A DNA stretch of 64,000 bases from Podarcis melisellensis (Eukaryota), in NCBI GenBank assembly GCA_964234715.1, contig OZ174275.1. One strand, given 5' to 3'. Position 1 is the stretch's first letter, and each line of letters begins with the position of its first letter. A program made the translations under genes and the position numbers. Shown piece after piece: positions 4,244 to 43,361 of this stretch. Below the pieces are notes generated by a model. It did not search any database. It saw nothing but the letters and a program-made list of their open reading frames with translations, and had not been told where the DNA came from.

Positions 4244-4354
4244 CTCACTAGCGATGTGGTGGGCATCTTTTAAGGTCTTGTAGATCTTGGCTTCCTTCAG
4301 GTCGTATTGCGGCTTATTGCCCTTCTCCTTGTCAAACTTCTCTTTGTATTTGAT
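4244..4354 (-). CDS. NEB: NEB exon 111 nt (~155)
   Basis: IKYKEKFDKEKGNKPQYDLKEAKIYKTLKDAHHIASE. Confidence 0.95.
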
Positions 4355-5007
4355 CTAATTCCAAGAGGAACAAGCGTTAAAACAAGGTCCCGAATATTAG
4401 CTTGTCTGGTGCCAAGGGAGAAAGAGTGCACATTGTCAAAACTGATCCCGATTGCAAGCAGACAGGTAGAACAATGCAAGCCATAAGACCTCTTTGAAAA
4501 AGAAGATACCATTAACAAAGACCAGGAAAATTCACGTGATGCAGCAATGAACTTGGTACACACTGCATTTACAAGATTTCATGTTGCGTCTTTCATTCAG
4601 TAGTTGTGTTTCAGCTCCACATTTGAAATATATGACTCATTCATTGGGGGGCGGGAATCTGACTGTTGTGTGTGTGCAGCATGGCTATCAAGAGACACAA
4701 GAGCTAAATTATGACTGCATTGTGCATTTTTCTGTGGCCTAAAATGGGTGTTTCCTGATACAGGGCAATAGAAACACCTGACTTTCTAAATATTTCTTTC
4801 CTGCCTTCCCTCCAAGGGATTTTGAGCAGCATTCAAGTCTCAGGGTAGATCTACACACAGGGGAAAAACCACTATAAATAAGTCAGATCATTATAACAAA
4901 AAAATTAAAAACCCCTATGAAAAGATTTCCTGCTCTCTGGCGTCATCTGGTGTTGCATGTTATTAGTGCATTCAAATCATTGTTTCTTTACTAATAATGA
5001 AAGTAGG

Positions 5008-5090
5008 TTTGACGGAGACTGTAATTTGCCCAGTAAATTTACACCCAGTAAATTTGACGGAGACTGTAATTTGCCCAGTAAATTTACACC
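5008..5090. repeat. 45-bp tandem duplication
   Basis: tttgacggagactgtaatttgcccagtaaatttacacc twice, period 45. Confidence 0.9.
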
Positions 5091-7412
5091 TCAGCATGGT
5101 TTTGAACCAAGGTTTGCTACACTGGAGCCCAATGTTCTACCAATACACTGCCTAATCTAAGAGGCAGTTGCATTTGATCTGATAACTATTGGCTTTAAGA
5201 GAAATTGCAAAAGACTGTGATTTTAAATAAAAAGACATGTTCATGATAGAGTATAAAGGTCCTGCTAGATGCACTATTCTCTCAGCACTAGAATTCAGCA
5301 GACTACTACAATGCACTTTTATTTACAATGACTTTCCTATGTCCTCTGATGGACAGTCTGGTTCTGCCTGACAACTGAAGTGAGCAAATGCGGCTTGGTT
5401 ACTTTCATTCTAATGGAGGAATAAACAGATTCACCATGTTTTCAGTTGAAGAACTTGCCAGGGGATATTACTGCTTACTACTACTTTGCACTGTTAGTGT
5501 GCAAAGTACACAGAGCAAGGTTCTTAAGACTGAAAAGCTTCATTATCAAGCAACTCCATAAAAGAAGAGGTAAGATATTAGTCATTTGCTAGAGAGAGAG
5601 AAAAAATAGCAGTTATACAAATCCTGGCATGAACCAGCAAAAATTAAGCACCTGGATTCCAAATGATTTCAACGAGAGCTTATTTTAGCCCTCTCACATT
5701 GAAATCAATGGTTTGATATGCTTAATTTTACATGGATGGCACCCAATCTTCACCCCACCCCTGGGCAAGAGCTGATTGACGTAACTGATGAAAGGAATAG
5801 GTCATGCTAGGGAGCAATGCACATGGCTGAAAAGAAGAAAAGTTTAACGTTAGAAAACTGGAAGATGCTGCAGTGCAGATTTCAATTCCATTCCACGATT
5901 CTGGATGTCTAAAACATGTTGGCATGTTTTTATCCACACAACCCTGTATCCTTCATGCTGGATAGCCTCATCTTTTGGACATGGGTTGACAAAAGATGCC
6001 AGGGGTCAATATTCAAGTGACAGTCAAGTACGCTGTTTATGTTTACTTTTTAAAAAATGCAGGACACTCTGGGCACTGAGGCTCTTGAGAAGGACAAGAC
6101 TCTTCCTACAATGACACAGACACACACACAAACACAAATGACGTATTACAGGTAGGTGGGGACCATTATGGGCCACCACAATTCAGAGATGCATTTTGTG
6201 TCTGATTTCTGAATGAATAGTGGCTCCACAGGGCACAAGCTACTTTCTTAGAATACTCTGTGGGTTTCAAAAGCACTTTGACATTTGTTGTGAGGACCCA
6301 CTAGATCAAAATGCAAGTCTCTCGTTAATACTTGCGATTTCCATCAGGATTCCATACTTGCTAAACAAGATTTGTTAATGGATATGAGATAATGAACAAA
6401 AAACAAGAGGCAGGGGGACTTGTTTCAATATTAAAACAAAAAGCAGCAACAAAACCATAAGACACAGTATACAAGAGTATCAGTAGCAGTGACAACAGAG
6501 ATGACAAAAGACACTGTGTAGATGGTGTTTTGACAGTTTTCATGGCAAATTCCTGCTGTTTCTCACAAGTAGAAAAAGACGGTTTCTCTGACATGCAGCT
6601 GTCCCATGCAACAATCACAAAGAGAAATGGGAAATAAAAGCATCCCCCTTTATTCCTTATGAAATTTCTGTCCATAACCTGTAGAAAATTGGTGCAAATA
6701 TGTCATTTACTTTCTAAACCATTTGAGAGTGAGTGAAGAATCATCTGAAAATGTCTGTCCGCAAATAACAGTAGTTAAGGAGCTATTTGCAAGAGTTCAC
6801 GGAATTTGTTTGAAGGTAATTCATCAGAAGCCTTTTCCCTAAATTGGTGGCTTTTAATAGGGGTGTCCACATTGTTATATTCAATGAATGTAGACTTTGA
6901 GGACTGTGTACAGAAATAGCTGAGCTGTTCACTCATACAATTTTTTACATGCAGCATTCCACAAGAGCATATTTTGTGTACCTGCAGCAGTTGAGCTATA
7001 AGAGCTCGTACCTGTGCTCAGTGCAATGTGTGGACAAGCTTATTCTGTTTCAAGAAACTCTGGGTTCTTAGTGAGAAGGTCAGTAATGATGAACTAGCTT
7101 CCCTGAACAACAGCTTGTCCACTGCTACTGCTCTTCCTCTGCAATCCTAGAGAGGATTGGGAATGTTCCAGGATATATTCTCAGTTAATTAAGGGCAACA
7201 ATGCTGTAGAATGGGCAGCATTCTACATCAACTGACTGTGCATATGAACTGGGGAGGAAGCACACTGCAGAGTGCACAGTTGTATTCAAGTGCAGATAGT
7301 TGCCATAGTTCCCCACTCCCCATATATATATAGAGAGAGAGCATGTATTGTGCTCTTAACACACTGACATGAAAACTAGTGAATGCTTCAGGAATTGCCA
7401 CCAATGTCATAT

Positions 7413-7759
7413 AGGTAAAGGTAAAGGGACCCCTGACCATTAGGTCCAGTCGTGGCCGATTCTGGGGTTGCGGCGCTCATCTCACTTTATTGACCTAGGG
7501 AGCCGGCGTGCAGCTTCCGGGTCATGTGGCTAGCATGACTAAGCTGCTTCTGGCGAACCAGAGTAGCACACGGAAACGCCATTTACCTTCCCGCTGGAGC
7601 GGTACCTATTTATCTACTTGCACTTTGACGAGCTTTTGAACTGCTAGGTTGGCAGGAACAGGGACCAAACAACGGGAGATCACCCCACTGCGGGGATTTG
7701 AACCACCGACCTTCTGATCAGCAAGTTCTAGGCTTTGTGGTTTAACCCACAGCACCACC
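7413..7759 (-). mobile_element. Sauria SINE
   Basis: (AAAGGT)n tail on + strand followed by gggacccctgaccattaggtccagtc; tRNA-like head at the right end; closely similar to 56094-56431. Confidence 0.9.
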
Positions 7760-8039
7760 AGTGTAAATGTTTGACTAAATTCCCCACTTTCATGTATTTT
7801 GGGCACCTCGAGCCTTTTCTTGAAGCCGAGACATTCTCAGAACAAATTCCCAAGCAGAACTTTGCATAAGGAAGAAAGGGGAGGTCTCACAAATTCACAA
7901 GGTTTTAATGTTCTTTTTAAAAAATAAAAAAATAGAAGCAGTGCCTTGAACACTTAGGATTGTGCCAAGAATATAGACTCTAGCGAGAGACTCATGAAAT
8001 TGGTAGCAGCGTAGGAGAGCTGCTTAAAATCCATCTTAC

Positions 8040-8138
8040 ATGGCTACTTAGGACATTAGCTTTCTTAACGTGTCTCATCATGGGCGTGTCGTATGATGCA
8101 GCCCCATGGCCCCTCATGCGTCCTTTGATGTATTCTGC
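8040..8138 (-). CDS. NEB: Additional NEB module exon 99 nt (candidate cassette or mutually exclusive exon)
   Basis: ctttgtag|AEYIKGRMRGHGAASYDTPMMRHVKKANVLSSH|gtaaga; phase 0, no stop, Y at +3, DTP, terminal SS. Confidence 0.8.
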
Positions 8139-8952
8139 CTACAAAGCGTAGCAAGATAGCAAGATTAGAATGGCAAACCTCCAAGATGGACAAAGCAAGA
8201 AGCTGAGGTAGAAGAGCCGGTGATATTCTTGTCTTTGTAGGGGCAGGGAGTCTCGTGGGAAGCAGCATGGGTCAGAAACGCACCAAGTGAAGTCGGTCAG
8301 TGTTTGTCAGAGAGGAAAGAGGCATACGCTAGCACCAAAATGCAAAAAGTTAACACGTTGTTTGAAGTACTTTCCCTGAGGGGAAAGTCCAGTGCTGCTA
8401 CCCTCACTATAGAAATATATAACAGCACAAACATTAAAATGTCTGCCAAAGAAAATTGATAAGGGAATAACTGGAGAGAAGACAATAAAAAGAAACATTT
8501 TGCCTCCCAGTACACAGCAAATGACCAAACCTTTACGGCATGTTTTTTAACACAAAAATTGTTTCAGGTCATTGGTATGGGAGCCCGGTGCCTTCCATAT
8601 GTTGTTGGACTCCAGTTCCTATCACCCCCAGCCAGCATGGGCAATGGTCAGGGAAGATGGGAAGTGCATTCCTCAGGTTCCCATTGAAATCATTGTTATT
8701 ATGGCTAAAGAAAGGCAATTAGGATCAAAGTTTGGCATGGTCAGGAATCTGCTAAGGGCCAGCACTCTAGCAGGGCACCCACTGAACCTCTCTTCACCAC
8801 AACCAACCTCCTTATTCACTCATCTTTTGCTCTGGCTCAGACAATACTGGTGATGTAAAGGATGAGATGAACCCTTGGGGGGTTTTGTGGGGGATTGGGG
8901 GGTTCCATTGTATTCAAAACAGATATAAATCATTTTAAATGCAAGGTAAGAG

Positions 8953-9123
8953 NNNNNNNNNNNNNNNNNNNNNNNNNNNNNNNNNNNNNNNNNNNNNNNN
9001 NNNNNNNNNNNNNNNNNNNNNNNNNNNNNNNNNNNNNNNNNNNNNNNNNNNNNNNNNNNNNNNNNNNNNNNNNNNNNNNNNNNNNNNNNNNNNNNNNNNN
9101 NNNNNNNNNNNNNNNNNNNNNNN
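8953..9123. other. Assembly gap
   Basis: Run of N. Confidence 1.
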
Positions 9124-9404
9124 CACGAATCTGGATTACTTCGCTCATCAGTGCTACTTTGTGAGAACAGAGACTCTGAATACACAAGGAGTTCCTGTCC
9201 CACTCAGTATAATGGATGAGGCAGCTCCCTGTGTGTAAAGGGTGCTTTCAGCACAGTAATTGTCTCTTCAGTGAGCTAAATAGGAAGCTCACCTACACAG
9301 GGACACAATACACAGAGCATAGCATCCACGTACCACAGCAGACTTCAATAGGCCATCAATACCTTTCAAAACAATCAAAGCCCCTAGGTCAAAAGCTTGA
9401 TCAG

Positions 9405-9540
9405 GGATGGTAGAGTTGGAAGGGACCACGAGGGCCATCTAGCCCAAACCCCTGCAAGGCAGGAATCTTTTTGCCCGGCATGGGGCTCAAACCCACAATC
9501 CTGAGATTAAGAGACACAAGCTCTCCTGACTTCACTAACT
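9405..9540 (-). mobile_element. Squam3-like tRNA-derived SINE with CR1-type tail
   Basis: Reverse complement resembles 28504-28632 (A/B-box head, ttcctgc, ctagatg...ttccaac). Confidence 0.7.
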
Positions 9541-9966
9541 TTCGGGACGGGGTGGGTGAGAGGCTTTGGTGGCAGCAGTGAAACAAGGAGATACTGAAGT
9601 ACATACACCAAAGTCCAGCACCCGGATGTGGATGCAAATTGCCCATTCCCCAGATATCAGATTGATGATTGGATGACCAGAGATAAGGAAATAGTCTCCT
9701 CCCTCATTGGATCTGTACAGAACAGTGGAGGGGGGCTGGGCTCTTTGCTTGTACCGCATATTTATGTGCATATGAGATGGTGAGGTGGCCACAACCACGA
9801 TTGACAGACAGCCCTGGAAGATTTGGCCAGAAAATATTAACCACCCCGATCTCAAATAAATTATCTCTAAAGCTGCTTTATCTGTAAAGTCAACATTACA
9901 TCAAAATAATTGCAAAAGAAAATGTATGCCATATGGTTATAAGTTGAAGCAGCCACCTGTTCATAC

Positions 9967-10071
9967 CTGGCTTGTAAGTTTGGACACCTCCTTGGCAAGT
10001 TCAATATCTGGACGTCCAAGCATGCTGACTCCCAAACCAGCTTCTCCACGAGCTTTGGCTTTATATTCAAT
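9967..10071 (-). CDS. NEB: NEB exon 105 nt (~154)
   Basis: IEYKAKARGEAGLGVSMLGRPDIELAKEVSKLTSQ. Confidence 0.95.
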
Positions 10072-10217
10072 CTAAGACAAATATATGAATTGTCAAGGGG
10101 TTAAAAAAACAAAAACAAAACCCCCCTCTGGCTTCTACATACTGAAATGAAACTATTTATATGCATGCTGTCATATTGCCACAAGTTGCTGAACAGTTAC
10201 ACTGATAAAGTACTTAC

Positions 10218-10319
10218 ATCACTGACTAAATGGGAGACTTGGGTGGCTTTCTTAATATCAGGGCGATCCGCCACACTAGTGTAATGGAGCTTGGATTTGG
10301 CATCCTTTTTGTATTGGAT
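10218..10319 (-). CDS. NEB: NEB exon 102 nt
   Basis: IQYKKDAKSKLHYTSVADRPDIKKATQVSHLVSD. Confidence 0.95.
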
Positions 10320-14137: not shown

Positions 14138-14962
14138 CTGTCGAAAGAACAAGAAGGTTAACATTGCACATCTCTTTACACGGCTAAACAGAAATCACCC
14201 CAGGGAAAATTGTGTTAATCTGCCCTGGTAGGTCCAAGGAGGCACTGAATTTAGTGAACATCTGAGCAGTGGAGCCCCATTTGCCCTAAGAGAACAACCT
14301 TCGCTGCATTAAGGGTCCTCCTCCACTGCCAGCCCTACCTCCCACACTGTTCCAGAAGGTTCCCCACAGCCCACCAGAATTGCATGAGGGTTGTGTTGTG
14401 AGCTGCAGGAGAGAAACAGGGATTTGGCAAATGTCACTTCCAATTTTCTGCCAAATGGGAGAGCCTGCTCCTGCTGGTGGATGCAAAGTCTAGTACCAAC
14501 CCATAATACGTAAGCCTATGGGCCTTTCTCTTAATCCCCATAAAAAGGTAAGCAATCTGAGTGGTAAATAATGTGTAAATATGAGAAAATTCATTAATAA
14601 ATTCATTCATTCATTCATTCTCCTACCATGAATCTATTGTTTCAACAAGTATTGGCTTACAGCAAATAACCATACTTATAAACACTGCTATGAAATGTGA
14701 GCTACCTTGAAAATAAAGAATTATATTTAAATAGTCTAAGGCTTAGCTTTTATAGTGACGCAAACTAAATCTAATATGTATCATCTTACAGACTAATGAG
14801 CAAAAAATGAATTTGGAACTTTGCTAGACACAGTTTATATAGAACGATTGGTCTCACCTGAAGTGTAGATTTGAAAGTAGGGATGCTGGAGCCAATGAGC
14901 TGAGTCATGTCCTATCCCATTGGCTCCAGCATCCTGCAAGGTAAATGATAATGTTTACTTAC

Positions 14963-15070
14963 ATCGCTTACTCTGTCCTTGACCTTCCGTACGTGGAGTA
15001 ACATGGGAGTATCATGGATTGTGGTATATCCCTTTGGTTTGGCCTTGTTATATTCCAGTTTGTAGAGGAT
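14963..15070 (-). CDS. NEB: NEB exon 108 nt
   Basis: ILYKLEYNKAKPKGYTTIHDTPMLLHVRKVKDRVSD. Confidence 0.95.
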
Positions 15071-42637: not shown

Positions 42638-42874
42638 CTGAAATGGGAAAACACAGGTTCTTTAAATATCTGCACTGGATCTTTCCTAATCCTAACTCTC
42701 TGGGTTATCCTTATGATTTCATGAAAGCATATCTGCTTTGTTTACTTGGTGGTCTTCCATAGCATGAAAGAGTTTTCTTTAAAAGAAGATGAACCACTGA
42801 AACGAAAGATATGAAGGATGGGCTCTTTGATAGTGACAGAAATCTGTGTGATTTTAAAGCTAAAGAGTGTTTAC

Positions 42875-42982
42875 CTCGCTTTGGACATCACTTGAATGCT
42901 TGGCATGGCGGATAGGCACACTGTCATGAGGCAAAAGATAACCAGTAGCTTTCTCTCTTTCCCAATTCTCCTTGTACAGATG
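42875..42982 (-). CDS. NEB: NEB exon 108 nt
   Basis: HLYKENWEREKATGYLLPHDSVPIRHAKHSSDVQSE. Confidence 0.95.
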
Positions 42983-43063
42983 CTGTAAAACAGAGAATTA
43001 AAGGGTTACACAAGGACTGTCACAGATTCCATTAAAACAAAACAAAACAAGGAAAGTACATAC

Positions 43064-43165
43064 ATGATTAAGAATCCTGGCTGCTTCTTTAGCTGCATCT
43101 AACTGTGGCGTGTCTGTCAGCGTATAGTTTGTCTTGATGTTATTCCATTCCTGGTGGTACTTAAT
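43064..43165 (-). CDS. NEB: NEB exon 102 nt
   Basis: IKYHQEWNNIKTNYTLTDTPQLDAAKEAARILNH. Confidence 0.95.
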
Positions 43166-43361
43166 CTGAAAAAATAAAACATACATAATAAAAATCTTTT
43201 AGATTTACAAGTTATATATGTATAACTAGACTCACACAATAAAACTCGGTGAATTATTAAGGCCCCAGTTTCCACAGATACATGGTTTAGTTTTTGTGGA
43301 TGAAGAAAATCTGTCTGACATGCGTACACTGAACTGAATCAAAATAAGAGGTAATACTTAC

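Follow-up and report, generated by a model that had tools for sequence, protein, structure and literature searches.

The stretch at positions 8040 to 8138 on the minus strand of the window is, with a probability that we put at about 0.9, a genuine cassette exon of nebulin, old in evolutionary terms, that adds one module to the protein. The window is the whole stretch of Podarcis melisellensis DNA that was analyzed, 64,000 nucleotides long; its minus strand holds the 3' part of the nebulin gene, whose super-repeat exons lie at about 35 to 64 kb and whose single-module exons lie at lower coordinates. When included, the exon would be spliced between exons 9967-10071 and 4244-4354, and it would insert one further module of 33 residues into the stretch of single modules that separates the last super-repeats from the Z-disc repeats. 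When skipped, 9967-10071 would be joined straight to 4244-4354, as in the canonical mammalian protein. Since the exon is in phase 0 on both sides, the reading frame should be kept whether it is in or out. The features concerned, all on the minus strand, are the following:

4244 to 4354, minus strand: downstream module exon, beginning IKYKEKFDKEKG, defined by its translation, the joint 4354/9967 and the mapping of the Anolis sagrei protein.
8034 to 8039, minus strand: donor gtaaga, seen in the sequence; its use is deduced from the end of a contig of run X5 at 8040 and from orthologous models that join to the orthologue of 4244-4354.
8040 to 8138, minus strand: cassette exon encoding one nebulin module of 33 residues, AEYIKGRMRGHGAASYDTPMMRHVKKANVLSSH, defined by its sequence and translation, the joint 9967/8138 in runs X5 and X11 and orthologous annotated modules.
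8139 to 8172, minus strand: acceptor region, with the ag at 8140-8139 and a pyrimidine tract, defined by its sequence and by the joint end at 8138 (CT..AC on the plus strand, which is GT..AG on the minus strand).
Within 8139 to 8172, minus strand: possible branch point ctaat for the acceptor at 8138, about 27 nt upstream of the ag, picked out by eye.
9967 to 10071, minus strand: upstream constitutive module exon, IEYKAKARGEAG...KLTSQ, in full IEYKAKARGEAGLGVSMLGRPDIELAKEVSKLTSQ, defined by the joints 10071/10218, 9967/8138 and 9967/4354 and by A. sagrei protein mapping.
10218 to 10319, minus strand: next module exon upstream of 9967-10071, IQYKKDAKSKLHY...LVSD, defined by the joint 10071/10218 in X11 and by A. 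sagrei protein mapping.

The stretch is an open run of 33 codons (99 nt, phase 0) without a stop, and it is in register with its neighbors, having 33 residues, an AEY... start, DTP at residues 17-19, an ...SSH end and phase 0. Its acceptor side reads ...gctatcttgctacgctttgtag, where an in-frame TAG that overlaps the ag closes the frame, and gtaaga stands directly 3' of it. The sequence-only reading had described a clean 99-nt phase-0 exon with a nebulin-like module at this place, and the sequence, the acceptor ag, the donor gtaaga and the translation bear that description out; the translations of the neighboring exons 9967-10071 and 4244-4354 also match those given there.

Profile scores for so short a module are low. 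Against the Pfam Nebulin model (PF00880), the module obtains 15.2 bits (E=0.022), under the cut-off of 20.1, and an undoubted neighboring exon obtains just 16.3 bits. An HMM built from the other modules of the window, with the candidate left out, gives 8040-8138 a weak 8.8 bits (E=0.25, rank 67 of 801 open frames), similar to the 6.9 bits of the true exon 4244-4354, and this model alone could not tell the candidate from noise. It is a weak sole criterion because an open frame on the plus strand at 42989-43099, which is antisense to nebulin and overlaps the minus-strand open frames 42863-42997 and 43001-43198, scores above the candidate with 11.4 bits. In pairwise comparison, the best local score of the module against the other modules of the window is 56, and shuffled versions reach 28.2 +/- 3.3 (0 of 300 attain 56); by this measure, its likeness to nebulin modules exceeds chance. 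The score of 56 belongs to the exon near 14960-15070 (LEYNKAKPKGYTTIHDTPMLLHVRK), which is therefore the closest paralogue within the window. The idea that 8040-8138 is an old paralogue of 9967-10071 finds no support here, as the latter is not among the eight best pairwise matches of the module within the window. The exon at 14960-15070 on the minus strand, LEYNKAKPKGYTTIHDTPMLLHVRKVKDRVSD, is almost unchanged in the pig nebulin model, where it reads LEYNKAKPRGYTTIHDTPMLLHVRKVKDEVSD.

The splicing of the exon was followed in public sequencing runs. Of those found, 18 are probably RNA and have small word shares, and six are DNA holders; four of the runs (X1, X2, X5 and X11) were aligned to positions 4290-10289. 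These runs are Logan contigs whose label, "RNA?", is a guess, and their depths are rough. X5 comes from organism A and X11 from organism C, the latter from another study. X1 and X2 had been picked through the abundant repeat at 7290-7889 and not through NEB exons, and neither of them contains NEB joints.

Exon 9967-10071 is spliced from its donor to either of two acceptors in X5 and X11. The inclusion joint 9967/8138, which skips 1828 nt and is GT..AG on the minus strand, has a depth of 9.4 in X5 and 17.7 in X11, while the skipping joint 9967/4354, spanning 5612 nt and likewise GT..AG on the minus strand, has a depth of 5 in X5 and 297 in X11; the joint 10071/10218 is found in X11. Since both alternative joints are present in both runs, the acceptor at 8138 is used jointly with exon 9967-10071, and the skipped form occurs in the same samples. 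The sequence-only reading had named the junction from 9967 to 8138 as the sign of additive use, and it is this junction that X5 and X11 contain.

On the donor side, a 129-nt contig of X5 carries 8040-8137 with 0 differences together with 31 nt of exon 9967-10071, and it ends exactly at the predicted donor. This end probably reflects a branch of the assembly graph at the splice site, and together with the gene models of other species it suggests that this species uses the donor at 8040. The joint 8040/4354 is absent among the 15 of 22 joints listed for the four runs over 4290-10289.

A different account of the donor side is suggested by X11, in which the contig with the joint 9967/8138 passes through the donor at 8040 into the intron, to 7760 and beyond. 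Cover in this run is about 15-18 from 8137 to 6553, and there is none in the upstream intron (8139-9966) nor in 4490-6489. In organism C, the read-through reflects either intron retention or another 3' end of the transcript. On this account, some lineages or samples would use the acceptor at 8138 but not the donor, so that the exon begins an alternative 3' end or keeps the following intron. Nebulin would then stop 15 codons past the module (at ...SSHVRWILSSSPTLLPIS* in the genome analyzed) and would have neither the Z-disc end nor the SH3 domain. We consider this unlikely as the explanation of the exon. Contigs do not show RNA ends; no AATAAA lies 10-30 nt from 6553 on the minus strand, the nearest being about 95 nt upstream; and the X11 contig ends in 30 letters that have no match, as would be expected if it broke at a repeat in organism C. 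The X5 contig, moreover, halts exactly at the donor, and every annotated orthologue splices on to the next exon.

The introns on both sides of the cassette exon contain repeats or presumed repeats. A SINE-like repeat of 345 nt at 7415-7759 begins 280 nt downstream of the donor, and it has a depth of 1e4-1e5 in RNA-type contigs of all four runs. It is missing at this site in X1 (organism A) and X11 (organism C), where 7414 is joined to 7760 with AGGGA between, and it is therefore a recent insertion, confined to the genome or lineage of the window. At 7680-7704 it contains tRNA-like text, GGTTCAAATCCCCGCAGTGGGGTGA, and ARAGORN called no tRNA in 7415-7759. A CT/TA microsatellite occupies 7311-7348; contigs break there, and it was skipped as a repeat in the read alignment. 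In the upstream intron, 8490-8689 and 9290-9489 have contig depths of 150-1900 in all four runs and are presumably dispersed repeats expressed elsewhere, and a run of N extends from 8953 to 9123.

The same module is present in the nebulins of other vertebrates. A phmmer search with the 33 residues of the exon against 1.84 billion representatives gave five matches, three of which have it exactly where the window does, with the orthologue of 9967-10071 before it and that of 4244-4354 after it: the lamprey Petromyzon marinus (XP_032807711.1, VEYTKQKPRGHGAASYDTPLMRQLKKASNLISH, residues 5857-5889, 22 of 33 identical), Brienomyrus brachyistius (XP_048862253.1) and Dissostichus mawsoni (KAF3843598.1). 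When the lamprey region 5821-5927 was used in a word search, 841 matches resulted, of which the best 120 were taken. Among these 120 are lampreys, sharks and a chimaera, sturgeon and paddlefish, teleosts, frogs, birds and lizards, and more than 100 nebulin models among the matches listed cover the module in full. The residues identical to the window module number 32 of 33 in Anolis sagrei nebulin isoform X26 (XP_067328664.1, residues 5067-5099), 31 of 33 in Sceloporus undulatus nebulin X3 (XP_042334160.1, residues 6036-6068), 30 of 33 in Phrynosoma platyrhinos, 26 of 33 in birds, 24 of 33 in frogs and 23 of 33 in sharks and chimaera. The 48-residue open frame at 7995-8138 gave no candidate in a word search, which is uninformative, as full-length nebulins lie beyond the length band of that search.

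From lamprey to lizards, protein identity of the module is 67-97%. Compared with lamprey, the module is 67% identical and the constitutive neighboring exons are 56-60% identical; judged by these values, it is as conserved as its constitutive neighbors. Eleven columns of the aligned modules are invariant (H11, G12, A14, S15, T18, P19, M21, R22, K25, K26 and S32), and the core HG-AS--TP-MR--KK is among them. For the window as a whole, nebulin has about 87% protein identity to both A. sagrei and Sceloporus nebulin. The A. sagrei protein is colinear on 10080-9967, 8138-8031 and 4354-4241, and its module starts exactly at 8138. The exons of the window were searched singly. In predicted nebulins, the module occupies the same position from lamprey to lizards. 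By the same results, the exon is not the unrecognized one that the sequence-only reading had supposed: it is already present, in included as well as skipped form, in gene models (RefSeq and others) of lizards, birds, frogs, sharks, ray-finned fishes and lampreys.

The annotated isoforms describe the choice in which the exon takes part. Of the 15 isoforms listed per taxon, Sceloporus, the ducks/penguin cluster and Carcharodon each have 14 with the module and 1 without, while in Xenopus the split is 12 with it and 3 without; one lamprey isoform likewise lacks the module. In all module-bearing nebulin models (184 of 184), the orthologue of the upstream exon directly precedes the module, and the isoforms that skip the module retain the orthologue of 9967-10071.

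These counts bear on the suggestion that 8040-8138 is a mutually exclusive partner of 9967-10071, so that a transcript would carry one or the other, in the manner of human NEB exons 143/144. Both are single-module, phase-0 exons and they adjoin each other, and the 15 of 22 joints listed leave room for a rare joint 10218/8138. However, that joint, which exclusive use would produce, is absent among those listed for the four runs over 4290-10289. Two runs instead have the acceptor at 8138 spliced to the donor of exon 9967-10071, the two exons are not each other's closest homologues in the window, and the skipped isoforms keep the upstream exon, so that the choice is between inclusion and skipping and not a swap. 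Mutual exclusivity is therefore rejected on the additive joint and the 184 models that hold both exons, and we regard it as highly improbable. Least credible of all is that 8040-8138 is the unused remnant of an ancient module duplication whose reading frame is open by chance: the weak HMM score, the pig model without the module and the empty word search with the 48-residue frame would fit such a pseudo-exon, but the spliced joint in two runs, the conservation of the module with its invariant core from lamprey to lizards and its presence in annotated models rule it out.

We therefore return to the cassette exon as the preferred reading. It is one more true coding exon of NEB, missed by the filter on open reading frame length, and it should be annotated as alternatively included. 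As the sequence-only reading had proposed, the module comes in addition to those of the canonical mammalian protein: in the pig model of nebulin (UniRef A0A8D1G5Z3), ...MLGRPDIEMAKKAATLSSQ (...KKAATLSSQ) is followed directly by VKYRENFNKEKG, without the module. To our knowledge, human nebulin has no module at this position either, and the pig model agrees with what the sequence-only reading had stated for human. The known alternative regions of human NEB are exons 63-66, 82-105, 143/144 and 166-177 (PMC7109182), none of them at the place of 8040-8138.

As to its role, the exon may supply an extra actin-binding or linker module. The strictly conserved core HGAASYDTPxMRxxKK suggests that the module may offer a specific contact or binding surface and not a mere spacer. 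By position, its neighborhood would correspond to the linker repeats M163-M170, a putative desmin-binding region; these linker repeats have been reported to bind desmin (PMC7109182). It is conceivable, and for us a tentative proposal that we doubt as a whole, that the module is more than 500 million years old, as its presence in lamprey would imply, that its core is a specific ligand site in the putative desmin-linker region, and that it is regulated by skipping in non-mammals and was lost or silenced in mammals.

Canonical mammalian nebulin, the reference for work on nemaline myopathy, appears to be without a module that is kept and alternatively spliced in every other vertebrate group examined. 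This difference may be of interest for comparisons of nebulin length, of the architecture of the Z-disc edge and of the partners of the linker repeats across vertebrates. The broader weight of the finding is small, and it opens no new mechanistic question.

Compared with known systems, the closest are the orthologous exons of A. sagrei, Sceloporus and Petromyzon, which have the same 33-residue module, both neighbors, the same frame and annotated isoforms with and without it; there is no difference of substance from them, just one to a few substitutions, and they are the same exon in other species. Human NEB exons 143/144 (S21a/S21b) are similar in being alternative, repeat-coding and near the C-terminal part of the repeat region (PMC7109182, PMC6200726). 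These two replace each other, whereas 8040-8138 is added or skipped, always together with its neighbor. The human Z-disc exons 166-177 (M176-M182) and the mouse Neb cassettes share with it the single module, the preserved frame and the variable inclusion (PMC7370890). Exons 166-177 lie further 3' and encode simple repeats of the TPExxRVKxNQ type, whereas 8040-8138 belongs to the single-module exons upstream of them and has an invariant core of its own, HGAASYDTPxMRxxKK. The mouse cassettes, conserved and unannotated exons found by long reads elsewhere in the gene, are a precedent for conserved nebulin exons that are absent from a reference annotation (PMC7370890).
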